NCBI GenBank assembly: GCA_043228905.1
Contig: JBHGNT010000015.1
Coordinates: 13,516,001-13,580,000, forward strand
Reading direction: 5' to 3'
Source: Azolla caroliniana
Taxonomy: Eukaryota > Plantae > Polypodiophyta
DNA: 64,000 bases
The translations under genes were made by a program, and so were the position numbers. This document shows positions 1 through 27,995 of this stretch, piece by piece; within the stretch, counting starts at the first letter, position 1, and every line of letters starts with the position of its first letter. A model generated the notes under the pieces. The model was not told the origin of the DNA, made no database searches, and was given only the letters and a program-made list of their open reading frames with translations.

Positions 1-658
1 TGTGATCAAGCCGTGCAAGACTACCGCCCCTAACATTCCCGACGGCTCTGGAAAAGTGCAGTGAATGTGAGCTTCTCCTAAGGGAAGAGCCCCATGTATC
101 CTTCACCCCGATTTTGCCAATTAGGAAAGCCCATGAATCCAGCTCTGCACCATAAATAGGCCTCTGGGTCCCTCCTTTCCTATCTCCCAGGTGTTTAGTC
201 ATGTTGAAATCACCTGCCATTACCCAAGCCTCAGCATCAGGTAATGTTGTCACTAACATCCTCCAAAAGATTGCTCTCTCGGGGGCTGAGTTAGGGGCAT
301 AAATGTTTAGCACCCCAACTTGTAGGTGATTCCATTTCAGAAGCACGTATAAGGCCCGACCCTCCACCAACGTGCTAGATGATGTTACTTCGTATCGGGC
401 CTTATCGCTGATCGAGATGCAGACCCCTCCTCTTTGGTGGAGGTCACCTTGTGCAGCTGACCACCATGTGGTCCACCCACCCGACAAGGGGTTTACTAAG
501 CTCTGAGTTTGCTCTTGCGAGAGGTGGTGTTCCTACAAAAGCAATATGTCAATATGGCCCCCTATATTAAGGGGATTCAGCTCCTCCTGAAGTCTTCGAC
601 ACTCTTGGTGTTGTCGGCCTCCACCAAGGCCCTGTACATTCCACGTTAGGATCCTCAT
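1..658 (-). mobile_element. L1-type LINE ORF2 5' part (APE endonuclease), degenerate, runs off window start
   Basis: Minus strand from ATG at 658 reads MRILTWNVQGLGG...IDILLL*EHHL and further on VLNIYAPNSAPERAIFW...WVMAGDFNM, the APE endonuclease motifs; contains in-frame stops. Confidence 0.85.
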
Positions 659-2460
659 CCGAAAGCGGTGACGCTGACGCCCATGTTCGGGCCGATCCCC
701 ATGTTAAGGGGCAACCTAACACCTATTTTGGGGGGTATGGTCTCCACAGCAGGCTGCAAATCCCCTATGGGATTCTCAGCCGGTCGTTCACAAAAATTGG
801 GCCATGCAATTAAAAACCCTACATCAACATAAAAGGACAATATCCAATTGATGTATTCTTACAACTTTTATAAGCAAACTCCAAAATAGGAAGATATTAT
901 TGCATTTGGTAGGCTTCTCGGAGACATATACTTGAAGAATATCCTTAATGATTTGATTAACTCATTCTGTTTGTCAATAAGATTGAGGGTGGTATGTGAA
1001 ACTCATGCTCAAAGTAGTTTCTCGTTTCTTAAAGATTTGCGTAACTTAAAAAATTGCAAGTAAACTTAGTATCTCTATCACTCACTATATCTTTCAAGAA
1101 ATCTAGATGATGACGATGAGATCAAATTACAAATCCAATAAGAGATTATAGAGTTGGAGAGACAAAAGTTAATTAAGGACAAACAAGAAATCAACATGGG
1201 TATAAGCAAATTCAAAAGAAATGCCCATAGACGAGATGAGTTCATGAGGGGGGCTAATATATACAACCTTAGAAGGTAAATTGCATGCATATTTTAAATT
1301 CAATATTTACATTATAATATTTGGATATGCAATAGGAGTGTGGGGAGGGCGGTCTCTAGTGAAAGCAACATTTAGGGGTGTGATTTCTCGAAGACTCATT
1401 TTAATATTAATGCTAAATGATATATTATTAATAATCTAAATATTAACTATATACAAATTAATTATAGTGAAGAATATAAAAGATTGTACCTCCAACAATA
1501 CTATGTATCCTGAAAGAGAAACATGATCTCCTTTAAGACCATCTTTATTTGCCATCTTGTCCCAAACTCTTACGAATATCATCTTGATCCCTACATTACG
1601 AAACTAGGATGTACTAATTGTAGGCCTAATATTGTAACATTGATAATATGTCACAAACTTGTAAACTTATTTCCAATAGGTCTCCATTGGAGGGAGATAT
1701 GACTCTGCGATGTCACATTACCTCTTTTTGGAACCACCTACTTCCTAGATGAATCAAGTCAAGGTTCTCATCGAGGATACATGGTGTGTCTTTTTGAGGA
1801 TGACCTTGTGGATCCATGTCCATCGATCCACATAGAAGGTTTGAGGCCATGTTGGAAGTTAGTTCGCTATGAATTTTGAGACATCTTTGGTACATCCTAT
1901 TCAAAGGAAAAAGGAAAAATTTGGAAAAATTTGTAAATGTTATCTAGAATATACCTAAAGTAGAGAAATACATACCTTTCACCACTGTGATTTGCTTGAG
2001 TTGGTATGGAGGAATTGTTAACTTGAACCCCTTTTCATTTGACAACATGTAACTACTATTAGGAATTAATATGTGAACCAAGTAAGCTGAGATTGTGATA
2101 AACAATGCACTTACCTAGAATGTGTGAACTGCAACTCATGGTCAAGAAAGATATCATGTTCGAAAGTTGATTTTGTAAACCTTGCTTACAAGTGTTCTTA
2201 GTAACAGTGGGTGTGGATGTGTAAGTACTAGTCTAAATTGTTGGTGATGCACGTGTTGGCGTTGTCATGGTCAATGCCGACTCAAAAAAATGAAGAGTGC
2301 TTATTTGTAATTGATTTAAACATTTATGGCATTCATCTTCTCTTTATGCTCATCTTTTGAAAGCCTCAATCCTGAGTAGATTCCTTAACATGAAGAGGTG
2401 TGTTGGAATGGTTTTGATAAATAATCAAAAGGCTCAATTTTTACCTAAAACACATATCAA

Positions 2461-2810
2461 GATGTATGTATGTGTGTATAAATTAATGATCGTATGGATG
2501 TGTATATATTGAATGAATGGCTGTATGAATGAATGTACATATGCATGCATGCATGAATGTGTGTGTGTATCCAAATGTGTATAAATATATGAATTCATGT
2601 ATATGTATGCAAGTATGTATATGGGTATGAAGGCGATTTAATGAATGTGGGAATCTATGTTTGAGTGTATGAATTTATATATGTATGTGTGCTTGAATTT
2701 GTGTGTAAATGTTTGTATCGTGAATGTATGCATATGTTTGATTGAATGAATGTGTGAGAGTGTATAAATGTATGATTGAATGAATGTAGAAATGTAGAAA
2801 TGTATGTGTA
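2461..2810. repeat. Low-complexity (ATGT/GAAT/GT)n tract
   Basis: Degenerate atgt/gaat/gtgt repeats seen directly. Confidence 0.8.
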
Positions 2811-2959
2811 GCTTGTCTCTAATAGCTACCAAATCATTAAGAGGCTTGGTGAGGGAATCACCGCCATGAATGATGTAGGGTGCGGTGCGTAGGCGAGGGT
2901 GCGTGCAATCTGCATTGTCCGATGTAGATAAAAAAAAGCGTCCACTCAAAAAAGTTGAT

Positions 2960-5900
2960 AGCTTGCCACTAGGAGCTCGATTCTCTGACAGGCTTTGTCA
3001 CCAAGAGCCTGATTGACTTAGGGCAAGAGCCCAACTGAAATCACTAGCTCGACAGACTTAGGAAGGAGCCCGATTCAAATCAAGACCCCAACTCAAAAAT
3101 AGACATAAAAAATTCTAAGTGAAACCAAAATTTGCCATCAAAATCTTACACTAAAATCCCTCTAAAAAATCTAAAACTTCCAATTACACAAAACTTAAAA
3201 CTTAATTTAAGCGTCAAATAACAAATCAAACTTAAAACTTAAAGCTTCAAATAACAAATCAACTTTATACTTAAAGCTTTAATTTACACTTACGTTAAAG
3301 CTTAAAACTTCAAATTACACAAATTCTCTATGCCAAAATGGTTCTAACATTACAAGATATGTAGTTTTGAGTTCGGAGAACAAAAATGTCCAAATTCCAA
3401 GTCAAAAAACCTAAAGATGAAATTCTAACATCACAAGATATGTAGTTTTGAGTTCGGAGAACAAAAAGTCCAAATTCTAACACATGTAAGCAGAGATTAT
3501 GGCTGTGGGGATGATGGCAAAATAGAGCCACAAAATTTGCAACATGTAACATTCGAATCTCTTGAAGTCAAGGTCAAGCCGTCACAATGCAGATACCGAA
3601 CCTTCTCAGTTTCACATATCGGCAATCGCCTCCAACCCCGACTTGCACCTCTTTGTAGTTTTCTAGTGTGGGATTGGGAAGTGTCTTGCGAGATGTCGAG
3701 TGTTGCTCCTCTTTTTGCACTAATTTGTTGCTTTTGACTTATGGATCTACCACCTTCTTCATTGGTGGATTTTGGTGCACCAACACGATAGACCGTCTTA
3801 GTTAGATCTTCCAATGTCTGTATACATTTCAAAATAGTTGCACAATCAAAGGATCCTCACCCTTGCTTGAGGCATTGAATAGCTTACTTGGCCATGTGTA
3901 TTTTGGACTTCCATGATTCCATCTCATTTGATGTAGGGTTTGTCTCCCTGACTGGTTCGACCTCTTTCTCCACTTCTATTTCTATGATATGACCCATTCA
4001 CATTTGGGCCATGTGAGCTATAAAAGGCAATGACCCACATAGGTGTAGCATGCACCTCTTAATAAATGCATACACTTACTCGCAAGGAATTGGAAATCAC
4101 AATATGAGCATTGGAGTGAGACATATACTATAGTGTGGGAGATGTCAAGCTCAATATTCTAAACCAATTGAGCCAAACATTGGGCTTGTCCGCATATTTT
4201 ACCTTTAACTCCTCACACATTGCATTGAATGCGGCTTCCGTAATGCTTTGCTTGAGTTACCACATCCATTGATAAAGATGGTTTCTCTCAAGCGCACTTA
4301 CTTTTGGTAACAAGTTGTCCACCCATGATTTTTGGGTGTGGAACTAACACAACAAAGGCCGACAATGTGTTTGCGCCCGTTGCGCATTTGCAATAATCCA
4401 AGATTGATGGTCTATTGTAACCATATTACCTATGCCATTATATGATGTCCAATATTTATTGATCACTATCACATTTGGCCTCACCTTGGGCATCCTTGGG
4501 AATATGACTCTCAAGCAACTTTCTTATGTGACTTGCTCATGGTTTGACCCCTTATTAGAACTACATTTAATCATGTACCATAACAGGATCCTAATTCCCA
4601 TGGCTTTGGGGCAACAACTATATATAATGGCAACCCGAATTGGTTTGTTTTAACTGTGGAGTCAATTGTCCAAGAGTTGTGTAGTGACAATTTCTCACAC
4701 ATTTCTAACATCGATTGATCTTGAAGCCCCAAGATAAGTGGTTGCATGGTTGGAGTTTTGGAGGAATCATGCAAGTAGGGTTGGACATGAGCCACCTTTC
4801 GAAGATCCCGGATTGCATATGCATCTTGCATAATCAAAGACCAATCAACATTTGACATAACACTCTTGATTTTTAAGCTAGGACCTCCTTTGGTATCATA
4901 AAGAACCTATAACTACCAAGTTCTAATGGACTAACGTTGAACTTACGATATGCTTTCTTACTCATGCTGATACATGCCACATGCCAAGCACACACAACAT
5001 CAAATAGGTCATCTTTGCAACATCTTATGACATTTGGGTGTGCCGGCAAATGGTACACATCCTGTCTACTACCTGGAACATGACCAGTATGAGGTCCATT
5101 TATTGAAATGGTCATGGACCCATAGTCAACTCCGTTGTTTATTCTAACTTTGATATGGAAGCTACACTCACATCTCAATGAACCCCTTCGCCAATGAGTG
5201 GAAGGATGAACACGTCGAGGCGCACCAGCACGATGACAGTTATACCTAGTCATGCACACACCCTTTTGTACTCCTTTCCGAAAGCATGTGTGATACTTTC
5301 TTTGAACATCCGTGAGTGCATCATGTAACTTAAGGAATTCTATCTTGATCACTTCTATGGGAGTGTTATATTTGACGACGCTCATTCCCACCATGTCGGT
5401 TGGTGTTGCCTTTGACACCATTTGGCAACCACAATGTTCACTAGTGATGCTATGATCACGAAGATCACAAGTCCTATGTCTCTTTAACACTTTTAGAGTC
5501 TTTGTCAATGGGTGATGGGAGGTGCTACCATGTGATGCCAATACCACCTCCCTCCAGTTCTCTACGTATATGACTTGTAGATTAGGTGATGCCTTAAGAT
5601 AGATTGCATTCTCATTCCCTAGCTTGAGTCGACTCTTCGTGCGCCTCCATGCATGGAGATTGAGAGGTGCACCTCTTGCGACATCACTTAATGTTTCTAA
5701 TGTTACCTTAACTTGTCTCGATAAATCTTCAACCCTCAAATCATACGTACCTCTTGTGAATGCAAAATACCTGGGGGAACAATACATGAAAGGATCCATC
5801 GCATTTTCTTCACATTCGGATACAAACGACTCAATGGTCATCTCCAATTCATCCTCAAATGTAAATGATGTTGTGGACTATGATGATGTATCCTCCAACT

Positions 5901-6250
5901 CATCTTCTTCCGTCATGGCAAAGAGTTCCATGATGCATTGTGATTGAATTTGGGTGTGATCGATCAGAAGTAATCTTAGCCCAATCCATTTGGGTGTGAT
6001 AGGAATAAATTATTTCCTTTGATTAGGGTGTGTGATTGAATTATGTGGAAAATAGACGTTAGTATGATCGATTATTTTCTGTGACTATTGTGTGTGATTG
6101 AATTTTGTGTTAGTAATCTTCTTAGTATGAGCATCATTTTCTGTGATTATTTCCAGTGGAAAATGGAAGTTAGTATGATCATTGCCAAGCAATCATTACT
6201 GGTGGTTGGGCTCTTACATGCTCAACGAGTCGGGCTCCTGCCTTCAGTCA
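2960..6250 (-). mobile_element. Decayed Mutator-like (MULE) transposon with fragmented transposase (about 3497-5847)
   Basis: ORF 4571-4858 has TIDSTVKTNQFGLPLY (MULE DDE first-Asp motif); ORF 4873-5847 has RYNCHRAG...CECSF...HTGH (WRKY/FAR1-like Zn finger); AGGAGCCCGA-like motifs at ~2970-3075 recur inverted at ~6204-6240. Boundaries are approximate. Confidence 0.65.
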
Positions 6251-7299
6251 TGCAGAAGAAATGCGGATATCAAAAGCGAGATTATGAACCCCCATTATAT
6301 TTTAAATTTTCCTTAAAAAACATGTCGTTATGCAACATGTCATTTAATGACATGTTCCAATGTGGAAACATTGTTAGGCTCACAAGTTGCTAAACAACAC
6401 ATGCTTTCTGTGTGGGATAGCAACACCGTTTCTAAAATCAAGGCATGTCGCTATGTGACTTGTTTGTAGAAGCGAATGTTTAGCAAGACCATGGCGAACC
6501 TTAACTAGGGAAGATGGATTGTCAATGACATTGTCCTTGAAGGGTGGGGATATTGTGAATATGAGATGGCATCATTGTGCTTCTAACGATCTTTTCCTTC
6601 ATGTTTTGTGCGGGTGCACTTGTAAGCACACTCTTTCTACATGGGATAATGTGCTTGCATTTTATGATTGTGTGTGCTAGAACATTTTGACAAACCTTGT
6701 CTTCTGTTTGCATGAGAAGAGGAATTTGCAATAGTATGTTGGTTTAATTCACTCAATGCACATGTACGCTCCCTCGTGCACGTGGGTATGACTTACTCTC
6801 TCAAGTGTACTTGTAAACATGAGTGTGAGTGATGTCCTTATATGCGTGGTTTGTTGGTATGAGCTCGTTCATATTAATGTGTATCATGTGTGGAGCGAGT
6901 GGTGTATTTGTATTTGCATTTATGTGCAAGTGTGTGTTTTGGGTACATGTGCTTGTGTTTTTTATATAACTGTCAGGTGTGAAAAAGAAAGGAAAGCTCA
7001 CCGCGATGTTTACAATGTGGATGGGTTGGGTGGGGGATCTCTTCCGTACAAGCAAGGTATTATCACCAAGACATTGAGGCATCTTGCTTTTGCTTTTTGA
7101 TTTTGTGCTTGCTTTTGTGGGGTTGCTTTTACAGTACTTCATGTACAATGTGGGCAAGCAATGATTGCACGTGAAGAAAAGAACAAAGAGGGGCAAGACA
7201 AGGCAAAGAAAGGCCAAGGCCACATTGTGTGATCCATTTAAACAACTTCCGGAACTTGGGGAGGATCTTGATGAATGGGATCGCCCCGGCGCAAGAAGG

Positions 7300-8745
7300 A
7301 TGGATGTGGTGTCGATGGCCATGTACTGGATGGGCATGTATGCCCTTCTCGAGAGGCTTCTCCCGCCGCCCCTACGCCAATGGGTCGATGACAAAATGCA
7401 AGCATTCTGGGATTGGCTACTCCATCGCAACAAACCTTCGAATGTCGTCACTCTTAGGGTTCCGGAGAGATTTGAGGGCTATACCACAAACCACTTGTAC
7501 CGCCACTCATTGGCGTATGTGGGTGCCCTTGACAAGGCCCTACACAAACACAACTGCCTCGATGTCATGCGGGAGGACGAAGAAGGCCAGATCGGGTTTC
7601 GGCTCCCGGTCGGGGAGCTCCTCCATGACACCTTCCGCGGGGTCGACGTGCAGTGGCGGAGGCAAAGGGATAATAAAGAGGAGAATGAGTCTGGTGATAG
7701 CGAGGCGTATTTCACGCTCGAGTTCCCGCAGTCGGCCAGGTCGGCAGTGGTGCCCGACTACCTGGAACATGTCACGCGGACCGCCATGGACATCCAACGC
7801 CGCAACACGCAGCTCGACATCTACAAAAACTCAGCCTGCGGGCATTGGGAATCTACTCCCTTCCATCACCCTTCCACCTTCAGCAGCCTCGCCCTCGACC
7901 CTCACCTCCGTGGCCAGCTCCTAGATGATCTCGATGCCTTCTGCCGGAGCCGGGAGCTGTACCATCGGCTCGGGCGTACATGGAAGCGGGGCTACCTGCT
8001 CCACGGCCCACCTGGCACGGGCAAGACCAGCCTCATCGCTGCGATTGCGAACCACCTCCACTACAATGTCTATGACCTCGAGCTCACGGATGTGACTGAC
8101 AATGCCGAACTCAAGTTGCTCCTCATGAATACCACTCGCAAGTCAATCATCGTCATAGAGGACATTGATTGCTCTTTCAGTCTCACGGACCGGGGGAATG
8201 TTCCGGAAGTCCCCTCGGTCGACCACACCCCCACCCCCACCACCACCACCACCACCACCACCACCCCCACCACATCATCCGATGAAACCCCCATGAACAA
8301 ATCGGATGCCATAGCTTCATCGAAATTGACGCTCTCCGGGCTGCTCAATTTCACGGATGGCTTGTGGTCGGGCTGCGCCGAGGAGAGGATCTTCATCTTC
8401 ACCACCAATTTCAAGGAGAAGCTCGACTCTGCGTTGTTGAGGCCTGGCCGCATGGACGTACATTTTCTCCTCTCCTATTGCAGCTTCGCTGTCGTGAAGA
8501 AGCTCGCAGAGAATTACCTGAACGGAGCCTCGCCCGAGACCCACCCGGATTTGTTCAAGGAGCTCGAGGAAGTGGTGTGTGGGAACCATACCGTCACTCC
8601 GGCTATGGTGGCCGAGATGTTCCTAGGTCATCAAGATGATTATCCAGAGGTTGCACTAGCAGCAGTGATTGAAGCTTTTAAGAAATCCGTGAATGTGAAC
8701 AAGAAGGGCAACAACGCAGCTCCTTTAATCACACTTACAAATTAA
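7300..8745 (+). CDS. Plant BCS1-like AAA-ATPase (AAA_assoc N-domain plus AAA domain), intronless, 481 aa
   Basis: Intact ORF with HPSTFSSLALDP, WKRGYLLHGPPGTGKTS (Walker A), IIVIEDIDC (Walker B), LTLSGLLNFTDGLWS and FTTNFKEKLDSALLRPGRMD. First ATG is at 7300 (the track start at 7165 is a TTG). Confidence 0.93.
   Translation: MDVVSMAMYWMGMYALLERLLPPPLRQWVDDKMQAFWDWLLHRNKPSNVVTLRVPERFEGYTTNHLYRHSLAYVGALDKALHKHNCLDVMREDEEGQIGFRLPVGELLHDTFRGVDVQWRRQRDNKEENESGDSEAYFTLEFPQSARSAVVPDYLEHVTRTAMDIQRRNTQLDIYKNSACGHWESTPFHHPSTFSSLALDPHLRGQLLDDLDAFCRSRELYHRLGRTWKRGYLLHGPPGTGKTSLIAAIANHLHYNVYDLELTDVTDNAELKLLLMNTTRKSIIVIEDIDCSFSLTDRGNVPEVPSVDHTPTPTTTTTTTTTPTTSSDETPMNKSDAIASSKLTLSGLLNFTDGLWSGCAEERIFIFTTNFKEKLDSALLRPGRMDVHFLLSYCSFAVVKKLAENYLNGASPETHPDLFKELEEVVCGNHTVTPAMVAEMFLGHQDDYPEVALAAVIEAFKKSVNVNKKGNNAAPLITLTN
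8239..8272 (+). repeat. (ACC)n microsatellite encoding a poly-Thr insert in the AAA-ATPase
   Basis: caccaccaccaccaccaccacca; PTTTTTTTTTPTT lies in the variable loop after Walker B. Confidence 0.9.
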
Positions 8746-9200
8746 GGAGAAGATGACATCAGGATTTACCTCCCTAAAAAAATACCATCAGATTGGTATA
8801 AGTATTTCTCTTTGCATAAAATTCAGCAAATCCTTGTTTTGGTTGTGCCAACTCCCCAGTAAATGTAATGCAATGTTCATGATTTCTTCTGGTATGTATT
8901 CAATTTGTGGCATTTCTATTTTTCTCCTATCTTTTATCTCCTGCATATCCCATCTTCTTCCTCTTTTGTGACCATGGTCATTATCTTTTGTTTGGAAAAG
9001 GGAAGTTATAGTGCATTCTTGTGAAAAGAGAGAATAACTTTTCCATCCGCCCACAAAGCTTGTAAATGCAAAATAATGAGCAAGAGAGCTCATTGTCTTT
9101 GGGTTCTATATTTTAGGGACTTTATTGCCCATGCTTCCTTTAGAGGAGATTCAATGGGAAAATAGGATATTTTAAAGGCGATTGAATGGGAAAATTGTTA

Positions 9201-9522
9201 TGTTGGCGTCCCTCCCAATGGGAGAAGACGGCCGGAAAGGCTGAAATCAGCAAAAAGGCTGATTAAGGGCCTGAAATCGGCTACTAAGTTGTTCCATTCT
9301 TTGCGTTTTCCCCTTTCTATTGTCTACGTGGTTTCCCTCTACTCTACTCGGCGAAGTTTGTGTCAAGGTTATTGCCTTGAGATTCTAGATATTCCCCTAG
9401 CGATCTAGGAAGGTTGTAACCATCTATACACTTTGTTATACGGAAGTTTTGGCACCCTGAGGGTTCCATGGTTTATCCTTGTTTTAGGGTTTCCATGTAA
9501 AATCTTGTGTCAAAGCAAGGTT
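9201..9522 (+). mobile_element. LTR fragment (Copia-like), cut by the TIR at 9523
   Basis: Starts TGTTGG; contains gggtttccatgtaaaatcttgtgt, a common plant Copia U5-type motif; no matching end found. Confidence 0.5.
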
Positions 9523-9985
9523 AACACCGGGACATTTGAAATAGGTAATATGTCGCATTCTTTGATTCTCATCTTGGTGAGATATTAAAAAATGCTTTAT
9601 TTTACTAGAATTTCAAAGACGTACTACGCATGCATACATGGTTTCTTAAAACATAGTCGAATTTAGATCTAAATAATTTCATGGCAATATGTGAATTCTA
9701 TATCTCTTGCTTTGGTATCCAACTCCAAATTGCAAAACAAAATTCCATGGAGGTTGACTTTCATTAACCGTAATTGTGGAGAATATAAAAATAGTACCCC
9801 ACTTTTGGAAGTGGTACAATGATAAATTTATTGTCTATTTACATATAATATATCACAATGTAATTTATGAAAGTGACAGTTATCTATTGAGTGAAATGAT
9901 ACAATTTGAAATCAACAACCTTGCAACCAATGTCACATGCAACTTCCATGTGTAATATTATAGAACAAATTTAACTATCCAATGG
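9523..9985 (-). mobile_element. Terminus (TIR plus subterminal region) of a second copy of the ParB-MTase transposon
   Basis: AACACCGGGACATTTGAAATAGGTAATATGTCG matches the 33-bp TIR at 51538 with 2 mismatches. Downstream blocks (ttggtatcc, aaccgtaatt, tagtacccca, acaatgtaatt) match the reverse complement of ~58950-59105. Confidence 0.85.
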
Positions 9986-10260
9986 AATGTTGTGGATGTA
10001 GTCAAGGAGATTTGGTTGGCCTTGGTGCATACATTAAAAGGAGAATATGACGCCATCAAGGGTGATTCAGATGTAGTCTTTCGAAAGAAAAAGGTTTTTA
10101 AGAAGAGATGGGAAAGGATGAATGTATTCCACATGGTTAATTGTTGTATACATTGGAGTTATCAACCACCTCTTTGGGCATTTTCTCCACCGATATGAGG
10201 CATGTGGCTATGTATAATTGTTCTTGGTATTGTCTTAGGAGTCTATGAGTAGTTGAAAAG
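9985..10260 (+). mobile_element. LINE ORF2 3'-terminal fragment
   Basis: WNVVDVVKEIWLALVHTLKGEYD...F...W...IHWSYQPPLW resembles plant L1 ORF2 C-termini; it interrupts the transposon terminus. Confidence 0.5.
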
Positions 10261-10539
10261 AAAGAAATAACTGAGATTTTGTGCAATCTCAAGGCTTGGG
10301 CTAAGAAGAAAGACCTTTATGACTTATTTTCTGGTTTGTTGAAAGCACGTGGCAACATGGGAGATATATAGAAAGGGAACAATTTTTTTTGCTTCATCAG
10401 AATGGATGAGTTCATTAAAAGCTGAAAATAATAACATTTTTACACATGGCTTTCAAATGTGGTGCTTTGTACCTAACTCATTAGAGGATATGTAGAGAAT
10501 GGCCAAGATAAAGACTCATAGAATTATGTTCAGCTTATG

Positions 10540-13000
10540 CAAGATTAGGGTATCTTTCTCAATCCTTTAGCTCTGATTTGTATCTTGAAAATAGGTGGAC
10601 ATGCATGTGTTGCTAGCAAAGGCCAAGGAATGGATGTGATGATAACAAAGAAAGGATTACTTGAAATTAATGTGATTGTTGGAACTGTCTTGCTGAATAT
10701 GTATATGAAATGTGCCTTTCTTGCAGAGACAATCAAGACCACGTTGATTTTAAGATAGGTTGAAAACAGGTGTGGGAAAGATGCTTTTATATGGCACTTA
10801 CACTTACGTATGCATTCGGAAGGTATATCTCTGAATGTTGTTTGTGTCTTAGAAAACTTGTGGAAGTTACAAAGACTTACAACTTAGGAAGAACTTGAGT
10901 TTGTTGATTACACAAGGACATTTATCTGGACATTCCAAGAGATGTTTAATATTTTCATCTCATATTTGATAAAGCCATATGTTATCGTGATCCTTTGTGG
11001 AAATGATGCACACTTGACAGTGCTTGTTGAGAAATTTACCTTGAATGTCAGTTTGAAGCATGAAGGAATCTTGTGTGAAAGAACGCTTGTGAAGCTGTTC
11101 GAGTTGAGGTCTCATGTTGGTGCTGAATCGGATTTTTATTCTCATCTATCTGTTTTTCCTTCTTGTAAGATTTGAAAAATGATGATGGTGTAGGAATCAT
11201 ACAACAACAATGGGAGGACAGAGAAAGCAAGAGAAGAAATCCAAAATCATTCAGGCTTCAGCTAGATATAGAGAATGAAAATATGATTGAGAGTGAGAAT
11301 AATGTAGCTGAAGATCAGTTCTCTAGTATTATTAGTGGAAGAAGCTTAAAGAAAAGGAAGCATTGCTATAGTGGTGGGAGAGCACCTAAGAAAAGGCGAC
11401 TATCACTCTTGAATTTAATTGCTAGGAAAAATCTAGAAACATTATCTACTCCCAATAGAAATGTGGAAACAATATCTAATGTTTCCTCTCCTGAAGCTTT
11501 TAGAAAAAGGGGGAGAAAATATGAGGTAGAAAACTTATTTCACAGTATGCTTCCTCTTTAGGAAGCATGTGATGATGTATGTGAAGAGGTAGTAGGAGGA
11601 TGGGACTAGGCAATCTATGAGCAAGACCAAGTGATATATTCATCATCATGTGATAATATAGAAAATAGGAGAGCTACAAAAATGCCTAATGAAAAGCAAT
11701 ATAGATGGAACTTGAACGGAGTTGAAGCCTCTAATAGATGTTTAAGGGATTGCAAATCATCAACAAAGACAATTACATGGAGAGATTCAAGAACATACAT
11801 GAGTGGGTTGTTGAATGGAGAAATGATCGGTATTATAAATATTCTTGGTGAGAAAGTCCTCGATTTGTTAAACCACCATGGAGAAGTGACTTCATTTGAA
11901 GCATTCAAGTTTATCATGAAGAATCAACACAACACAATTGTGACACTTGTCAAGTTGATCGAAGCACAATAAATGTTTCTAAAATTAAAGCATGTGACAA
12001 GGTACAACCATAAATTGAAGATATTGAGTGGACAATATGCAATTGAGGCAAAGTTTATAGAATTCATGTGTCACATAAGTTGTACATGAAAGTTTTTTAC
12101 ACATCAGTTCATCTTTAAGGATAGATCTGATTCACGAGCTCTTCACTTGGCAGCTTTTCAACATCTTAAAATCTATAGAGCTATGCAGAGGTGATAGATT
12201 TGAAGAGAGGTTTGTGTGGTGTGCATCTGCCCAAGAATTTGTAAATATTGAATTGTTACTTATGGCGAGCATCAAGTCATTACCTTTGACTTACCATAGA
12301 TCTCAAAGACGTTGGCAAAGCAGAACCCTGAATGAACTTAGAGTTGTTTTATGTCAAAAGAAACAATGGCAACATGGCTTATCTAGAATTTTGCCTTTCG
12401 AGCAGTAGAAAAATGATAAGAAGTGAAATATGAAAACAGGGTTTGGATCATGATATTGTAATCACTAATATGCTAAATGATATGTATGCAGAATTTCATT
12501 TCTTCTTATGAGATGCCAAATGGAGTCATTGAAATAGGTGGGGGGAGGATGCTCTTACGTATGCATTCGGAAGAATTCCATATCTTCTTATGTGATGGAT
12601 GGAGTCATTGTTCTTCAAATCTTGCATATAAGATGTGATTTTCATGGTCGAACACATCTGATTTAAAAGAAAGGAAAAGAAATCCATATTGCCATCGCTC
12701 ATCTAGGTATCAACTTGGGTATGCTCATTAGAAGCACTGTTAATATGTATGCAACATGTGGAGGTTTATCAGATGCATGTAAACTGTTTGATGGGCTGAG
12801 ATCCCTCAAGGTGGGTGTTGATCACATGGCTTTACATAAAGGCATGTTCATACATGCTAGAATAATGGATTGAGGCATACAAAATGACCTCTATACCATA
12901 ATGCTTTGCTTGAGTTTTACGTTGAATATGGAAAATAGAGGATGCTTGGTCATTGTACATGTGGTGGTATATTGGATGCATGTAAAGTTTGTTAAGGATT
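10540..13000 (+). pseudogene. Degenerate PPR (PLS-class) gene fragments
   Basis: Fragments translate as GLLEINVIVGTVLLNMYMKCAFLAE (~10655), STVNMYATCGGLSDACKLFDGL (~12735) and NALLEFYVEYGK (~12900); no continuous ORF. Confidence 0.65.
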
Positions 13001-13240
13001 AGATGGCCCAAAGGTGGTATCTAGATATCTTGAATATGAACATGATGAGGAAGATTGATTTGCTTTGAGCATATGCAAATTCATGATATGTTTCAACTAT
13101 TAAGGAAGTGCTCAATCAAGTGTATCAAACGAAGGATTCATGGCTAGCCATTGTCTTACAGAAGACGGGTTGGGGAAGGATAATCACTTTCTTTCCATCA
13201 ATTTGTATTTTGTAGCTGATATGCTTTTTAAAACTAATGG

Positions 13241-14275
13241 TGTCAAGAATAGTATCGAGACAAAGAGGAAATTAGTACTAAGAGATGAATATTAGTACTA
13301 ACAATGGGCACGGTTCGGTTTTAAGGCAAAGAAACCGAACCGAACCGAAGCCAAACCATTTATTTAAAACAAAAACAAAACCAAACCGTTTATGAACTCT
13401 CAGTATTTAAACCAAACCATTTAAGAAAAAGTTGAAACCAAACCATTTAAAACCAAACCGTTTAGGGAAAAGTTAAAACCAAGCCGAACCATTTAATAAA
13501 AAATTTAAACCTAACCAGTTAAATAAAACTAATTAAACATCTAAATAAACAAAAATACATCAAATTAAATAAGCATTTAAGTTAAATTTAATAAATCAAT
13601 AAAAGAAACTTTAATTGAACCATTAAATTAAATAAACAATTAAGTTAAATTAATTAAATCAATAAAAAACCATTAAATCAATAAACTATTAAGGTAAAAA
13701 AAAAGATAACCAAAAACCTATAAACCCTTAAACCAAACCTATAAACCTATAAACCTAAGTTTTAGAACCGAACCGAACCGAACCCGAACCGAACTAAAAC
13801 CGAACCGTTCATCGAAAATCCAAACCAAACCACACCATTAAAATTTTTTAGAACCAATAATCCGTTAAACCATGGCTTAACGGTTCGGTTCGGTTTGAGC
13901 CGAAACCATGCCCCTTGCTAATTAGTACTAAGAGGAAAAGAGGGTGTAGAACATGAGAGAGAGAGAGAGAGAGAGAGAATGATGATAACAACGATATATT
14001 ATGTGAAAACAATATACAAGGATGGCTAGGAGCCTTAAGACTGACGTTGAAATGATTTGGTTCGAAATAATGCCTTGTGCCTCCTTTTATAGAGTTCTCA
14101 GGAGTACTCCTAAAGTTTGTAGAATGTTCTAGAGAAATCTAGAATATACATCAATTTTCTATAGTAAAACTTAAATGAAAATAATATCTTTTGTATTACA
14201 ACATATAGTCTAATGCTCAAGAGCTCAACCCATGTAACATAAGGTCATGGGTTCAAGTCTTGCCATATCATGACA
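13241..14275 (-). mobile_element. Solo LTR of the Gypsy family whose 5' LTR is at 32026-32414
   Basis: TG...CA ends; reverse-complement match to 32026-32414 including the (GA)n tract; flanks aatgg/aatga (4/5 TSD). Confidence 0.88.
13299..13920. mobile_element. hAT-type MITE inserted in the solo LTR
   Basis: Imperfect TIRs TAACAATGGGCACGGTT / AACCATGCCCCTTGCTA; 8-bp TSD ATTAGTAC on both sides; many subterminal AACCG repeats. Confidence 0.88.
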
Positions 14276-14508
14276 AATGAAAAGATATGTTTTCTAAAAA
14301 AAATAATATTATGTGAATAGCCTAAACTATGAAAGAGCCTCTTGACAACTTGTATATAAATACAATTTAAATACTTAAACATTTTGTTTAAGAAGTGAGG
14401 AAATGCACCCGTGAAATAAACTAAAACTTTAAGGATTAATATATAACGAAGTCAAAAGTCAAAGATGAACATTTAATATTCCTCAAATTATACAATTCAC
14501 CATATAAA

Positions 14509-15115
14509 TCAATTTATAAGCAAGTTTGGTATGGTGGGCTCTTTAGGAAGAGTTGATTGTTCTAGATTGTTTTCATTAGCATCGCCTACATGCTCCACTG
14601 AATCTTGTGTATGTTCAGACTCTAATACATCTTCTAGGTCTACAAGGTCCGTGCCTCCTTCTTCATCTATTGGTTCCATTGGTTCTCTTGAAGTTATTTG
14701 GAACCTCTCTTTTTCATTGATATGCTTGACTCCAACTTCGTGATCTTGATGGGGATAGTCCCAGATACCTTGGATCCTCATTTTGATGAACTTTACTTGT
14801 TCAAGGTCCTTCTCCAATGCAACGCAGTTTCGAAACATCTTTAATGCACAAGCTGTAGTAGTACCTGATAGTGGAATGGAAGTGAACAAGTACAAATAAG
14901 AATTATATGAATTTGAGTAAACTTATATTATATACCTGTGCCAGAGAACAAATCTAGAACCAGATCATTTGGGTTTGAGAACAACTTGATAAGACGGTTC
15001 ATTAATCTTTGAGGTTTTTGAGAAGGGTTCACAAGACTCTTATCACCTGAAATATGTCGTAACTTCTTCGTCATAGTTGGGCACATGATATAATTGACCA
15101 CGTTGTGTTCGTTAA
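14509..15115 (-). pseudogene. Last two exons of a second beta-class DNA amino-methyltransferase copy, truncated by a Copia insertion
   Basis: NPSQKPQRLMNRLIKLFSNPNDLVLDLFSGTG|GTTTACALKMFRNCVALEKD; homologous to ~57975-58591 with the same intron inside the FSGTG Gly codon. Confidence 0.9.
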
Positions 15116-17197
15116 TGTTGAGAGACAAGCTCAACATGGGCCGAATCAGCTGACGAAGCTAAGAGCTGGATTGAATGTGGGCTGATCGGCTAGGCCAGGA
15201 TTGGCCGAAGAAGCTAAGAGCCGGATCGGGAGGGAGCCGACAGGTTGATAGTGTTGTCATAAAAGGCCGACTCTTTCCACTTTGTATCCATAGTGTGCAC
15301 ACGTCCTCTATCTAGGGCTTGAGTATATAAGCTCAAACCTTACATTGTAAAGATATACTCGGAGTGTAAGAGTTGTAGACTAAGAGAATAAGAACTTCCA
15401 TTGAAGCTCTAAAACTATGTCCATCTTTTGTTTGTCTTCTTGTTTTACATCTATGTTTCTTGTTGTGAATCTCTTGAAGGTCCTCATACACATTCTTCCA
15501 CATATTTCTTCATGTACTTTCATAAAGTGGTATCAGAGTGACCTCACTGTCAAGCGGCAACGATAAGCAGAGAAGACTGAGAAGGGAAGATATCTGGCTG
15601 AAAGGAAAGACTAGGTGAACAACATCTACTTCTAGTAAAAGAATGGCGACACAGTCCGACATGAGTGTGGAAATTTGGAAGTTTGATGGTAAGAACTTCG
15701 CCCACTAGAAGGAAATGTTGCAAGATGTACTCATCATCCTATGACAAGTTGAAACTATTATGGATGAAATAGCCAGATCTGCCATTCGAATGCATTTGGC
15801 CGAAAGCGTCTATTTCAGCATGGCCAAGGAGACAACAACATTCTCTTTGTGGGAGAAGTTATAGGCGGTGTACGAGAAGAAATCCTCCTCATCAAAGTTG
15901 ATATTGATTCGACAACTATTCAACATGAAGATGAAAGAGACGAACCCAGTTACCTCCCACATTAACACCTTTAGCTGAGTGTGATCTGAACTCTCCTCCC
16001 AAGGGATTAACTTTGAAGAAGAAGTCAAAGCCCTTGCTCTCCTTTTGAGCTTGCCGGCGAGTTGGGAGGTATTCTGCACAACCTTTGTCAATAGTTGTCT
16101 AAATCTAAATCTAGATGAGACGAGCAGACAAGTCCTCACAGAGGACATCAGGCGAAAATCGATGGGCTCACCATCAATGAGTCGGCAGAAGCCCACCACT
16201 CAACCGAGTCGATCAAGCGATTGAGCCGATCAAGAGAACAAGTTGGAAGAATCGGTCGGAACACCAGTCAACCAAGAAAGAGGGGATATCAACAACAGTC
16301 GAAGTCCAGGAATAGTCGATCAAGTGATTTTTGCACTCATTGCTAAAAAACTGGTTACAGTGTTTCCGACTACTAGTCGATCAAGAGGAAAGAGAGCGGT
16401 CAGCAATTTGAGTGGAACTCAGTACGATCTGACGCGAACCGTTCTCCAGATGGCAACCAAATCAATGTTGCCGATGCTTGATCAGGAGAAAATCTCTCTC
16501 TACAGGACTCAATGATTGGAGAAGTCCTATACAATTCACAAGATGCACAAACGTGGCTATTAGACTCTAGTGCCACATTTGATGTGACCCCGAATATAGA
16601 ATGGTTTTCGAACTATTCAGCTGGCGCCAACGGCACAGTCAGACTAGGCAATGGGTAGGAGTGCGCAATCACAGGGATCAGAGAGGTCCTTATCCAATTT
16701 CCAAATGGCAATATTATCACCCTATACCAAATCTGGCATATACCCATGCTGGAAATGAGTCTAGTCTCCATCAATGTGCTTGCCGAAGCTGGGTATAGAA
16801 CAACTCTGAATGAGTGGACATGGATGATTAGCCGAGGAAATCTAAAAATCGGGAATGGATACAAGTACAATAACTTGTATGCACTAATGGCGATTAGTCT
16901 AGAAGGGGCAACAATCAGAACAATAACTTAAACTTATGGCATGGCCGACTTGGCCATATGTCTCAAGCCAGACTGAATCGGCTAATGGCAATCGGCTACA
17001 TCCCGAAGCTCCAGACAAAGATGGACTTCTATGAGCATTGTCGCTATGGGAATTAGGCTCGAAATCCGCACTCTCTCCATTACGAGACCGTACATCAACC
17101 CCTAGAATTGGTCCACACAAATATATGTGGACCGATGCCCGAAAGGTCACTAGGAGGCTCCCGGTACTTGATCACATTCGTAGATGATTGTACACGG
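15116..17197 (+). mobile_element. Truncated, degenerate Ty1/Copia element (5' LTR 15116-15522, PBS-Met 15528-15538, gag-PR-start of INT)
   Basis: TGTTG...TTTCA LTR followed by TGGTATCAGAG; KFDGKNF gag start; WLLDSSATF protease; stops and frameshifts throughout. Confidence 0.85.
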
Positions 17198-17789: not shown

Positions 17790-18290
17790 TGAGTCCACTC
17801 CTCCATTGCCGCCATTCTACACTCAATTGTTGCCATTGTGGGGTCCAAGCATCATTTGCCACTATTTGATCCGATGAAGTTCACTCCTCCATTGCCACCA
17901 TTTTACACTTAGTTGCCGCCACTGTTCGCTCCTATTGAGTTCACTCCTCCATTGCCGCCATTCTACACTCAGTTGCCAATACTGTTCGATCATGGATTGT
18001 TGCCATAGTTCGATTTGACGGAGTTCACTCCTCCTCCACTGCCGCCATTCTACACTCAGTTGTTGCCACTGTGCGTTCCAATCATCATCTTCCATTGCCA
18101 CCATTCTACACTCAGTTGTCGCCATTGTTTGGTCCTACATTGCAATAATTGTTCGAACCAATAGAGTTCACTCCTCCATTGCCGCCATTCTACACTCAGT
18201 TGCTGCCACTGTGCGTTCCAAGCATCATCTTCCATTGTTCGATCGGATGGAGTTCACTCCTCCATTGCCAACATTCTACACTCCATGAGT
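17790..18290. repeat. Tandem repeats with core GAGTTCACTCCTCCATTGCCGCCATTCTACACTCAGTTG
   Basis: About 6-7 degenerate copies with variable spacers. Confidence 0.85.
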
Positions 18291-18379
18291 GCAATTTATG
18301 TTTATTCCTCAAAGGTATGAGATATCAAACATGAATTTTGGGAAGTGAAGATAGATGAAGTAAATAAGGAGAAAACCTA

Positions 18380-18997
18380 GGAGGGCCAAGGAATTCCCCA
18401 ATTGCAATCTCTCCATGTTGTTCGGGGTTATTCTAGGTTGGATGGTCATTGTATTGCGGTTAGAGAATTAACTTGTTTTGCTTCCATTGTGTGCAGGGAA
18501 ATTGGAGGTATTGTTTAAATAAAGTATATATTCAGAATTGGGAGTACCATACATTGAATGATAAGGAAGCAGTTGATGGAGAAACGGAAAATAATGTTGG
18601 CTTCACATATCAGGAATGTGGAGATACTCTGAGCGATGTCTTAAACGTTGGGGATAATTTTGTTGTAAATGCAGAAGAATGCAATTCAGAGGGTGTTGAT
18701 TTCTATATATTGAAGTGCACGGTTTGTAAACATTGTGCAACGAAGAATATTGTAGATGCTTGGGGAAATTTTGTATCTGTCGGGACATTCTACATCAAAG
18801 GTATTTTTTATGCAACACTAGATCATTATGATTATGTGTATATGCTTTTAGAAGACAAACCAATAACGTACATTTACTCTCATTTGGTCGAGCGCATCAA
18901 CATCCCGATGTCGCAATCCAATAGTTGCTCAGGTTTATACACAATTAATGCTAATGTGTATGAATTTATTTACAACAGTATGCCATGGAATTTGTAG
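18380..18997 (+). pseudogene. C-terminal fragment of a DNA transposase (possibly Sola-like)
   Basis: GIPQLQSLHVV...AVRELTCF / CFHCVQGNWRYCLN (one frameshift), a R-x-x-[ST]CFCxxC...C-x-N Cys cluster of the kind seen in DDD transposase C-termini. Confidence 0.45.
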
Positions 18998-21419
18998 CTA
19001 CAAGGAGATCATACCAATTTTCTTGTAAAACAAGCAGAGGACATGTATTGCAAAAGAACAGTTTAATAAAATTGTTTGGGAGACTTTCTTCTTTCTGATA
19101 TACAGTTTTCTTTCCATTCTTGTTTCTTAATAAAATGATTTGGGAGTCTTCTTTTTTATATACAATCTTCTTTCTTAATAAAATCGTGTGTCTGTTTAAT
19201 AAAAAACTTTCTTAATAAAATCGTGTGTCTGTTTAATAAAACACTTTCTTAATAAAATCGTGTGTCTTTTTTATATACAGTCTTATTTCTTAAAAAATAG
19301 TTTAATAAAATCGTTTCAGAGTCTTCTTTCTGATATACAATTATAGTTATTGCAACTTTCAGTCTTAGTGTTTGTTCAATGTGCATAATGACGATTATAC
19401 TGCCTGGAATACATTTTGGCAATGGTTTTATTACTCTCAAGTGAACCATGTACCAGTTTAAACAGTTTTCCTAATTTGAAGAAAAAGTAGCAACATGAAA
19501 TCAGAAATCGTGTACCTACTCTTAAAATTACACAGTAGATAATTTACTCAAAACAAGCGATTTAATTCTTCATTGATTAATCTGTCGTCAAATTACATAT
19601 TTATAATACACCATTGGCAATGTCTACAAAGCGCCTATAAATAGCTAAGCTCTTGTTGGTCAGTGGAACTTCTCTACATATATGATCTGCATACCGAGCT
19701 CGGTATGGAGTCCACAACCATGCAATTAATTCGCAGGTTAATGTTTTCACCAAGTAGTTATCAGGCATTTCCTCTGGTACAATGAGACAGCATCTGCGAA
19801 GGTTGAAGTAATGCTGGAAATGTTCTGTATCCACAATCAACATATTGTGGGCATTATATTCGGGCCAAGTATCCCAAAAATCAGAAAGTCTTTTTAATCT
19901 TGCATTATCCTTCAGCTCACATTTTTCTCGTGTCCACTAACCCTTGAAATGTTGTCGCCACTTGGGGAAGAATCTTTCAACTGTACACACTTCCACACAT
20001 ATGTATGTGGTTTTTCACTCCAAATAAACAAATCAAAGTATTGCACAACCCACTCTAGAAATTGATTTGAGTCCCTCCTTGGCTGCATATATCACACACC
20101 CATAAGGACTTTATCATGCTCCAAGATCAAGGCTCTTCTTTCGTCTTCTAATGTTTTAGGTTTCCATTCCTGCAACTGTGCCTGTGTTACACCAAGTATT
20201 GGTAGCACACGATCAATTTCAATAAACTCAGGTTCTGTCGACACAATTGGTGTTCTTTTCCTCTTCAAAGCCCTGGTCGACTGTGTCATTGGGTCTGGCT
20301 TCACCTTGTATTGTTGTTGTGCAGCCATTGGGCCAGACTTCACACTACTTTGCTCTTGTATAGTCGACTGTATCATCGGTCTTGGCATTACCTCTGTGCA
20401 TGTAGATACTTCTCTAGTCGATATCAGCCCATTAGTGGCACATTATGCATCTACCTGCAAAATCAGAACATTTGTACAACATGCTTGATCTACTTGCGTG
20501 ACCAGATCATTTATGTCAGTTGCTACATCTACTTTCAAGATGGGGTCCTCTAAACATGCAACAAAATCAACAGTTTCCACACTGACATCGGCCTTAGGAG
20601 CAATAGATTCAAACCCTTTAGACTCTGCAACATCAGAAAACACCAACATATTCACACTCACAAAGTAGTTAACAGTCTCACAAAACAACATAATGAACAT
20701 GAAATATTCTGCAACAAAATAATAATATTATCGTAATATCCATCATAGAATTCCATTACATAATGTGGATCAAGCAACAACCAATCTGAGGTTTTACTTG
20801 TCCAAATAGATCATAGAAAATCTTCATAATTTTCTCGGAAAATAGCTCACAATCATATCCCACTAATTAGTAACTGGCAGTAATTAGCTCCAATTCAAGA
20901 GCCCCTTGACCAAGTAATTGGTCTTGTCCTCGATTGTAGTCCCTTCTTCAGGCTTTTTCTAGCTGATTGCCCATTTAGCCTTGCTTCTTTCATCCATTGC
21001 GGAAGTGTGTCCTCCTCCGACAACCTTTCCGTTGCCTCAGGAGCGACTTGCATGTCAACTGTGTCATGTGTTAGCTTTTCAAGTAAAAGTGGAATCTGGT
21101 GGGACATCATCAATAGTTGGGCTCGGCGGGGTTGAATCAAGGTTTTGGGGTTCGAAGAAATGTTGCATTAAGTGTTCAAAAATATTGTTGTTATGAACCT
21201 TAGATTTACATGTTGTTTCCAATATTTCATGGCTTTTCACAACGTTGCCTAATTCAGTACAATCTTCCAAAAGAATAAGGTGGAGCTGATCTGAAGGAAA
21301 TGTGATAGCAGGATTCTTACTTTCAACCACGTTGTCAGCTATCTCCTCGTCGGTTGCGGTGTCATCGGCACTAGACACCTCATGCAACCTCCTTAATCCA
21401 CGAGATTCTACAACAACAT

Positions 21420-22270
21420 GTCAGCTAATTAGCGGCTTCTCTTGTGTTTTTCTATCACCTTAGATTACAGCTAAACATGGTAGCTTGATACCATGATATC
21501 CTAGCTAATTAGCTACATCTTAGCTAAGAATGGGAATAGCTAATTAGCTATTCGACTTAAGTATGGTAGTAGCTAATTAGCTCCTAGACTATAGGCTAGC
21601 AGTAGTTAATTAACTACATCTTAGTTAACAGCAGCTAATTAGCTACCACTTAGCTAATTAGCTACATTATAGCTAATCAACTCCTAGACTATAGGCTGAC
21701 AGTAGCTAATTAGCTACATCTTAGCTAATTAGCTATTCTTCTTAACTATAGCAGTAGCTAATTAGCTACCACTCTTATTGCTTAGCTAATTAGCTGATAG
21801 ACTATAGATTGGTAGGAGCTAATTAACTACATCTTAGCTAATTAGCTCTTTGACTTAAGTATGGTAGTAGCTAATTAGCTACCGCTTAGCTAATTAGCTC
21901 CTAGACTATAGGCTGGTAGTAACTAATTAGCTATTCTTCTTAACTATGGCCGTATCTAATTAGCTACCACTTAGATGTAGCTAATTAACTATTCTTCTTA
22001 ACTATGGTAGTAGCTAATTAGCTACCACTCTTGATATTGCTTAGCTAATTAGCTACATCTTAGCTAATTAGTTGCGAAACTATAGATTGAAAGTAGCTAA
22101 TTAGCTATTCGACTTAAGCAGGGTAGTAGGGAATAGTTAATTAGCTACATTGTAGTAATTAGTTGCTAGACTATAGGTGGGCAGAAGCCAATTAGCTACA
22201 TCTTAGTTAATTAACTATTCTTGTTAACTATGGCAATAGCTAATTAGTTACAACTCTTGATATTGGTTAG
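21420..22270. repeat. Satellite built on the palindrome AGCTAATTAGCT (left part)
   Basis: Dozens of AGCTAATTAGCT cores with short variable spacers. Confidence 0.92.
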
Positions 22271-27644: not shown

Positions 27645-27995
27645 GTTAGCTAATTAGCTACATCTTGGCTAATTAAATATTCTGCTTAAGTATGGCAGTA
27701 GCTAATTAGCTACATCTTGGCTAATTAGCTATTGTACTTAAGTATGACAATAGCTAATTAGCCACCACTCTGGATATTGCTTAGCTAAGCAGTATAACAT
27801 TACATTGTAGCTAATTAGTTGCGACAATAGCTAATTAGTTGCCACAATAGCTTATTAGCTACTACACTTTATACCGCTTAGCTAATTACCTATGTTGTAG
27901 CTAATTAGCTACTACACTAATGAACCATACCAACTAAATAGCTACCACACTTTATATGGCTTAGCTAATAAGGTAAGATGTAACTAATTAGCTAT
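27645..27995. repeat. AGCTAATTAGCT satellite (right part)
   Basis: Continues the same array after the Copia TSD. Confidence 0.9.

Follow-up and report, generated by a model that had tools for sequence, protein, structure and literature searches.

The window analysed here, a 64,000-nucleotide stretch of the genome of the fern Azolla caroliniana (contig JBHGNT010000015.1, positions 13,516,001 to 13,580,000, forward strand), contains exons of an amino-methyltransferase gene in two places, in both next to the terminal DNA of a transposon. This raises the question of whether the methyltransferase is a selected part of a transposon family and, if so, what it might do there. An earlier note on this DNA took positions 9523–15115 (copy A) for a second, independent copy of the element at 51538–59353 (copy B). 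We find that copy A derives from a DUF7869 (Sola-like) transposon with terminal inverted repeats (TIRs), of which it represents the right end, inverted with respect to copy B. The second copy is therefore real, but it is a fragment only and belongs to a separate subfamily. The features of the two copies are as follows.

9523–9559, minus strand: right TIR of copy A, 37 bp, starting with AACAC on the plus strand
9560–9979, minus strand: subterminal DNA of copy A, aligning to the 3' ends of L017, L018, L019 and copy B
9980–14275, no strand: secondary insert of 4.3 kb that splits copy A (from self-BLAST, repeats and translations)
About 9980–13240: AT-rich repeat DNA inside the insert, including PPR-like stretches in decay
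About 13241–14275: LTR-like repeat inside the insert, with a second occurrence at 32026–32412
About 13285–13919: MITE-like insert within the LTR-like repeat
14276–14508, minus strand: 3' non-coding DNA of the copy A methyltransferase gene, 69% to copy B 58592–58815
14509–14864, minus strand: last methyltransferase exon of copy A, with the end of motif I, motifs II–III, an acidic tail and the stop; open frame
14865–14935, minus strand: intron of copy A in the FSGTG Gly codon, 71 bp, GT–AG
14936–15115, minus strand: 3' part of the penultimate methyltransferase exon of copy A, with motif X (NPSQKP) and motif I (LDLFSG)
15116–15525, plus strand: Copia-type LTR, with TG start at 15116, which cuts copy A inside the exon at 15115/15116
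51538–59353, plus strand: copy B, complete element of 7.8 kb with 37-bp TIRs (51538–51574 and 59317–59353) and a 4-bp target-site duplication (TSD), CGAT
51865–54536, minus strand: DUF7869 transposase of copy B (PF25273, E = 3e-52), with a frameshift near 53500
54990–55250, no strand: palindrome array of copy B between the two gene starts, with sites at 54998, 55049, 55171 and 55222
55413–58591, plus strand: spliced gene of copy B for a ParB-fold and beta-class amino-methyltransferase protein, with a premature stop at 56715–56717

The TIR of copy A agrees with the left TIR of copy B at 35 of 37 positions, as the two mismatches noticed earlier imply, and with the right TIR at 34 of 37. The homologous subterminal DNA ends at 9979 rather than at 9985 as first given, and resumes at 14276–14508 as proposed; the two stretches align at 64–69% to the right end of copy B. 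The last two methyltransferase exons lie where they had been placed, on the minus strand at 15115–14936 and 14864–14509, opposite in orientation to copy B. The last exon was identified by tblastn and codon alignment to copy B, and the penultimate exon part matches Pfam N6_N4_Mtase (PF01555, E = 9e-10). The TG start of the truncating Copia LTR and the TGGTATCAGAG site are read directly from the letters, and beyond the LTR come a primer-binding site and gag-like remains. Within the window neither a second copy of this LTR was found nor any of the missing parts of copy A (transposase, ParB exon, motif-IV exon and second TIR). With one TIR, no transposase and a methyltransferase gene cut by an LTR, copy A is non-autonomous, and as only a single end is in hand the 4-bp TSD is readable only around other copies. 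The 4.3-kb insert has no match among the related elements and is missing from run X10, which contains both the TIR and the methyltransferase; before 9523, 44 contigs of X10 show loose ends that agree at only 0.4, that is, many different flanks.

A 4-bp TSD is a criterion for Sola transposons (PMC10741241), and one is found around copy B and, as TAGA, around the element of the liverwort Riccia (L012, 2883–13813). TIRs are of 37 bp in copy B and L003, 34 bp in L002, 21 bp in L007 and long in L011, and the termini start with AACA(C/T) throughout. The only Pfam match of the transposase is DUF7869, which our literature search found mentioned in no paper. In the intact contig L003, to which copy B is 98.7% identical, the transposase is an open frame of 890 residues in which D355, D436 and D478 form a candidate DDD triad. 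The elements are called Sola-like here on the TSD and the TIRs.

Over all 171 codons shared by copies A and B, dN/dS is 0.15 (95% CI 0.09–0.25, P = 3e-17), with values of 0.17 for the last exon and 0.105 for the penultimate exon part. The five differences on which the earlier note had relied are indeed all synonymous, but the 20-codon segment containing them, with no non-synonymous difference, is the best stretch of the alignment; over the whole of the shared coding region, 56 differences are synonymous and 48 are non-synonymous (pS 0.51, pN 0.12). The intron, GT..AG in both copies and 71 bp long in A compared with 90 bp in B, splits the same FSGTG Gly codon after its first base, as had been seen. 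This position is common to copy B and its fern relatives, and the intron is missing in the Riccia elements. Intron identity between the copies is 50 of 71 aligned columns (70%) and that of the 3' non-coding DNA is 69%; these regions are more diverged than the coding DNA overall, as had been claimed, but not more than its synonymous sites.

Branch rates, derived from pairwise distances between extant copies, give copy A a dN of about 0.07 in the conserved core against 0.01–0.03 in its sisters. A count of private changes, which undercounts synonymous changes and is usable only as a comparison between branches, gives a pN/pS of 0.79 for copy A. Its own branch has an excess of amino-acid changes, two of them at near-invariant residues; copy A is therefore a relic in decay, and it is the active lineages that give the selection signal. 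In one correction to the earlier reading, purifying selection acts on the family's active lineages and not on copy A, which is without the catalytic motif-IV exon and keeps only motifs X and I.

Across the family, the transposase lies head-to-head with a gene for a ParB-fold and beta-class amino-methyltransferase protein in 15 of the 17 distinct contigs that are long enough, and the methyltransferase exon is downstream of ParB in all 43 rows. Look-ups started from the transposase recovered the linked methyltransferase in 3 of 3 cases. The fusion is on the strand opposite to the transposase, within one TIR element, in copy B, L002, L003, L006, L007, L011 and L012. This layout is found in more than ten subfamilies and one liverwort (Riccia L012 and L094), as well as in the intronless L011, with element sizes of 7.6–11 kb in these streptophyte plants; homologues occur in Ginkgo and Chara. 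Family-wide median dN/dS is 0.036 for the ParB part, 0.047 for the motif-IV exon, 0.067 for the penultimate exon and 0.091 for the core of the last exon. Among related subfamilies the transposase core has a median of 0.05, similar to the conserved methyltransferase exons (0.04–0.09), and values near 1 were not seen. Motifs IV, X and I are nearly invariant across about 45–54 loci. Transposase and ParB distances correlate within ferns (Mantel 0.72, uncorrected for shared ancestry). No confirmed RNA run contains the element sequence, and the matches listed include no joint across the intron; the viral contigs searched contained no relative of the ParB part. With both low dN/dS and transposase linkage, the methyltransferase is, as the earlier note concluded, a selected part of a multi-copy family. 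Taken as one joint claim, we are highly confident that 9523–15115 represents a decaying, non-autonomous right end from a separate subfamily of a fern and liverwort Sola-like cut-and-paste family, and that in this family the ParB–methyltransferase gene lies head-to-head with the transposase, experiences strong purifying selection and has diverged alongside the transposase.

The motif order IV, X, I (DIPYG, NPYQKP and FSGTG in copy B and relatives) is that of the beta class. When exons were searched one by one, the ParB part and motif-IV exon were not recognised by NCBIfam, PHROGs or Pfam, and Atlas gave a single lead, to N6_N4_Mtase (0.86). The model of a natural intronless homologue, P0283, matches beta-class enzymes (E = 6e-11) with a permuted Rossmann fold. 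The predicted methyltransferase structure is nearest to the 6mA enzymes M.BceJIV, M1.HpyAVI, M.MboIIA and CcrM, the 4mC enzymes PvuII and N4CMT scoring only slightly below, and this together with the Asp-type motif suggests that the target is probably 6mA rather than 4mC. The ParB part is predicted to adopt the N-terminal fold of ParB, with a helical DNA-binding region after it: its top 14 Foldseek matches at E < 1e-3 are all ParB or Noc (E down to 1e-5), and PadC, pNOB8 ParB and KorB are its top matches by VIA (Z 9.8). The nucleotide-binding motif of bacterial ParB is GxxR; the family reads GG[SN]H[ST] there (GGSHS), and since the Arg is absent CTP use by this domain is putative only.

Arrays of palindromes with a spacing of about 51 bp are found in copy B, as four CGATGC-N3-GCATCG sites, and in L059. 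The copy B type of site recurs in L001, L007, L032, L052 and L054, and Riccia has other sequences. We propose that in active copies element-specific palindromes of 15–19 bp, set in an array between the two promoters, are bound by the ParB-like domain, which delivers the fused enzyme to the DNA of the same element. There the enzyme would write an amino-methyl mark that may help intact copies to be expressed or mobilised in the face of host silencing. As such a protein would act on DNA carrying its own sites, the benefit would return to copies of the same subfamily and the gene would be kept under selection. Copy A, having lost the transposase, ParB exon, motif IV and array, is capable of none of these steps. 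For the self-marking mechanism by itself the balance is about even; the combination of a decaying copy A with self-marking in active copies is the explanation that we mildly favour for the data as a whole. Against self-marking, the arrays could be transposase sites instead, motif IV is DIPY rather than DPPY, the GxxR Arg is missing, and copies carry host 5mC. Most differences between copy B and the high-coverage contig L003 are C>T changes (CG 3.0% and CHG 4.8%, compared with 0.3% transitions at A/T sites); inserted copies therefore receive host 5mC, and whatever protection there is does not last. The CpG o/e of the elements, 0.6–0.8, is not distinctive. More tentatively, land-plant Sola-like transposons might run a private epigenetic system in which a parS-like array, a ParB-derived reader and a methyltransferase mark the element's own promoter region, array and protein changing together between subfamilies and the whole being retained since before the liverwort–fern split; we regard this joint reading as possible rather than probable.

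Dam methylation regulates bacterial IS10 and IS50, and the enzyme could similarly act on the transposition reaction, marking ends or target DNA and timing excision or insertion rather than transcription. The strict linkage and co-divergence with the transposase would suit this, as would the palindromes near the ends and in introns of Riccia L012, but the array of the fern subfamilies is in the central intergenic region, more than 3 kb from either end, and the copy A end has no repeated palindrome, so that we consider it unlikely. We give still less weight to a DNA-binding or chromatin accessory factor with a catalytically weak or dead methyltransferase domain, for which DIRS1 methyltransferase domains are cited as precedent (PMC4738411). 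Motif IV is non-canonical across plants (DIPY, DLPY, DAPY, DFPY) and enzyme activity is a prediction; however, motif IV retains its catalytic Asp, Pro and Tyr and the SAM-binding motif I is likewise retained, at dN/dS < 0.1, and deeper homologues have canonical DPPY. That selection reflects a host function, such as sperm 4mC as for Marchantia MpDN4MT1, and that the transposon is just its carrier, would fit the homologues among plants whose sperm are flagellated (Chara, Riccia, ferns and Ginkgo) and the two genomic homologues without a transposase within 10 kb (L008 and L013); it is improbable given that the genes are many-copy and inside TIRs, that genomic copies are mostly broken (A, B and L008), and that MpDN4MT1 is without extra domains (PMC8885841), whereas the protein here includes a ParB domain and shows no SPPY motif. 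A one-off capture of a gene from the host or from bacteria, with neutral hitchhiking, to which only the near-neutral rates of copy A's own branch lend anything, is contradicted by the shared layout and by dN/dS far below 1 and can be set aside.

The value of copy A is that, as a diverged second subfamily, it supplies a measured selection signal. Should the enzyme be active, ferns and liverworts would possess a mobile 6mA or 4mC writer, and if the private-system reading is true, a land-plant transposon encodes a DNA-mark writer that would be a source of non-5mC marks in ferns. The intact natural copy L003 and the predicted binding site are at hand for biochemistry.

In motif order (IV...X-I) and fold the enzyme resembles CcrM, M.MboIIA, M.RsrI, M1.HpyAVI and M.BceJIV, and in its ParB association phage ParB–methylase loci (PMC4738411); unlike the bacterial beta-class enzymes it has introns and a DIPY motif and is carried by a TIR transposon of a eukaryote. 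Marchantia MpDN4MT1 and bdelloid N4CMT are likewise bacterial-type beta-class amino-methyltransferases in eukaryotes (bioRxiv 10.1101/2021.02.12.428880; PMC8885841), but they are host genes making 4mC, have no ParB domain and are not transposon-borne. VANC of the Arabidopsis VANDAL elements is, according to the summary of the Bostrychia paper, also a transposon accessory protein, one that works on short motifs repeated within the element encoding it; it removes 5mC, is not a methyltransferase and belongs to the Mutator superfamily. PAG2 and PAG3 of red-algal Plavaka (EnSpm) elements, suggested to bind the element carrying them and to modify it (bioRxiv 10.1101/2025.02.11.637652), share a transposon-borne PF01555 methylase and a ParB-like domain adjoining inverted-repeat arrays, but there the transposase superfamily is another and the methylase-SET and ParB-2OG oxygenase are in separate genes. 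Sola1-1_Ec32 of the brown alga Ectocarpus, a 21.5-kb Sola-type transposon with a 1104-residue protein (PMC12477816, Genome Biol 2025), has, in the available part of that account, a ParB-like domain fused to a 4mC/6mA methyltransferase opposite the transposase strand and the same proposed self-marking role, and that part gives no dN/dS or palindrome array. The likeness is one of described layout, the fern and liverwort elements are smaller (7.6–11 kb), and no named brown-algal match that would bear on common descent was present among the proteins looked up, a minority of 660 profile hits. The ParB–methyltransferase transposon design is thus already published for Ectocarpus, and the plant family is a new member of it, with a methyltransferase under as much constraint as the transposase core; the algal guess on the importance of the accessory protein is now quantified and extended to land plants.

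Self-comparison of the window shows that the right end of the complete 7.8-kb element at 51538–59353 (copy B) is homologous, in inverted orientation, to 9523–9979 and 14276–15115, which belong to the element fragment at 9523–15115 (copy A). The inverted homology described in the earlier note therefore stands, except that its first block ends at 9979 rather than 9985. The two mismatches reported for the TIR at 9523 are confirmed against the left TIR of copy B (35 of 37 positions match); against the right one there are three. Comparison with copy B places the last two exons of the methyltransferase (MTase) gene of copy A at:

15115–14936, minus strand, penultimate MTase exon
14864–14509, minus strand, last MTase exon

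The reading frame is open in both exons, and the intron between them splits the FSGTG glycine codon in both copies, as had been noticed (71 bp in copy A, 90 bp in copy B). A Copia-type LTR starts at 15116, within the penultimate exon; a 4.3-kb insert keeps the MTase gene and the TIR apart; and nothing of copy A was found in the window beyond the TIR, the subterminal DNA and these two exons. The repeat-derived insert at 9980–13240 has decayed PPR-like stretches and internal duplications, and is probably a gene-fragment-carrying repeat family because many related contigs occur in sequencing runs. At 13285–13919, an AT-rich, MITE-like element whose inverted ends are rich in AACCG is nested inside an LTR-like repeat found again at 32026–32412. 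Elsewhere in the window, palindromic tandem repeat arrays are common to 21494–22270 and 27643–27997, accompanied by a 95% identical 300-bp repeat (22271–22570, 27241–27540), and a 1338-codon open frame (38630–42646) lies in a GC-rich nested LTR-retrotransposon region where CpG is not depleted (o/e 1.17).

Over 171 shared codons, counted per exon, copies A and B differ by 56 synonymous and 48 non-synonymous changes (pS 0.51, pN 0.12), giving a dN/dS of 0.15 (bootstrap 0.09–0.25; Fisher P = 3e-17), which is not near 1. The values are 0.105 for the penultimate exon, 0.17 for the last and 0.185 for the acidic tail. The segment in which the earlier note counted five changes, all synonymous, was read correctly and is the best stretch of the shared coding region. 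The intron and 3′ non-coding DNA, said to be much more diverged, are indeed only ~70% identical in aligned columns, but their divergence does not exceed that of synonymous sites. For ten related copies, median dN/dS is 0.036 for the ParB part, 0.047 for the motif-IV exon, and 0.067 and 0.091 for the core of the last two MTase exons, compared with 0.05 for the transposase core.

In a tree of a contiguous genomic segment, copy A forms a separate branch beside the copy B group and a second group (L018/L019). Its best relatives are ~79% identical, and it is a subfamily of its own. When pairwise distances are split among three extant copies, its branch has a core dN of ~0.07 against 0.01–0.03 for its sisters (bootstrap P 0.02–0.05) and a dN/dS of ~0.3; the dN excess is not significant when all shared codons are counted. 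At a motif-X position that is Tyr in 53 of 54 loci, copy A has Ser; at one before motif I that is Trp in 51 of 53, it has Leu. From the core dN excess and these changes at near-invariant residues, we conclude that the purifying-selection signal stems from active ancestors and that copy A has been drifting since its inactivation. The feature is real, a dead copy, and the inference drawn from it is correct at the level of the family.

That family is multi-copy and ancient. Homologue searches and fetched loci recover a recurrent layout, a DUF7869 transposase head-to-head with a ParB-methyltransferase gene between TIRs. In 19 rows, representing 17 distinct contigs, the DNA on the upstream side of the ParB part extends for 3 kb or more; 15 of these contigs contain the transposase, and the two that do not are a Chara gene and a disrupted Ceratopteris copy. 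An MTase exon is present in all 43 rows with sufficient downstream DNA, and all three look-ups that began from the transposase found the partner gene. The repeated layout and low dN/dS bear out the claim that the MTase is a selected part of a multi-copy family and no one-off capture. Transposase and ParB distances are correlated (Mantel 0.90 overall, 0.72 in ferns), and three fern groups are broadly alike on both trees, with support weak in places. Contigs of sequencing run X10, from a different organism, span the TIR and the MTase exons and lack the 4.3-kb insert; for 44 of these contigs the match stops at 9523 and the flanking sequences differ, so the terminus is fixed and insertion sites are many. 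An intact copy (L003; coverage 111 by contig name) is 98.7% identical to copy B and encodes an 890-aa transposase. The liverwort Riccia sorocarpa (L012) shares this design; a 4-bp TSD is present, and the FSGTG intron seen in ferns is missing. Its two adjacent DUF7869 elements (2883–13813, 18064–22101) differ in palindrome type, the second sharing its palindrome with locus L094. Annotated homologues occur in Adiantum, Ceratopteris, Ginkgo and Chara. The relatives of copies A and B suggest a fern as their host. The Ginkgo proteins P0119 (Gb_10123) and P0123 (Gb_37443) are ~46–49% identical over the ParB part, motif IV being missing or clipped in their gene models. A further locus, L011, contains:

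630–9803, DUF7869 element bounded by long TIRs, in which a 17-bp quasi-palindrome recurs

Its ParB-methyltransferase is intronless (981 aa), has a canonical DPPY and shares ~25% identity with the fern protein; within the right TIR, transposase-end sequence occurs a second time (9446–9560).

The N-terminal conserved region has a ParB/Noc-like predicted fold (pLDDT 80), in which a different residue takes the place of the arginine found in the bacterial nucleotide-binding motif; protein-family scans, in which the spliced gene's exons were searched separately without joining, left the ParB part unexplained. In the C-terminal region, motif IV (DIPYG) is followed by X and I, the order typical of the beta class. 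The modelled structure of a natural intronless homologue best matches the 6mA enzymes M.BceJIV, M1.HpyAVI, M.MboIIA and CcrM, the 4mC enzymes PvuII and N4CMT scoring slightly lower. Palindrome arrays lie between the two gene starts in fern subfamilies: CGATGC-N3-GCATCG in copy B and four other loci (L001, L052, L054, L059), spaced ~51 bp in B and L059, and CGATAC-N3-GTATCG in L007 and L032. None was picked up in L006, and Riccia elements have different palindromes of 16–17 bp. In size and symmetry the family's palindromes are similar to parS sites. Our best reading, in which we infer binding, catalysis, target base and effect alike, is that the ParB domain would bind the array and the fused methyltransferase would mark the element's own DNA, a mark that may help intact copies to remain expressed or mobile. 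Copy B departs from L003 chiefly by C>T changes in CG and CHG contexts, at ~10 times the A/T transition rate. This pattern is the mark left by host 5mC on copy B after its insertion and shows that inserted copies eventually become host-methylated.

The family studied here shows the 4-bp TSD, TIRs and size described for Sola elements (PMC10741241), its placement resting on these features. We found no description of it in land plants in literature searched largely outside subscription journals. The Ectocarpus report describes, on Sola1-1_Ec32, a gene lying opposite the transposase that encodes a ParB-like part plus a 4mC/6mA methyltransferase; its proposed role is modification of the element itself (PMC12477816, 2025). 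Judged from that description, the likeness to this family is one of layout, a gene of similar domain make-up lying opposite the transposase. In red-algal Plavaka elements, inverted-repeat arrays lie next to a ParB-like gene, and the PF01555 methylase is encoded separately (bioRxiv 10.1101/2025.02.11.637652), whereas in this family ParB and MTase are fused.
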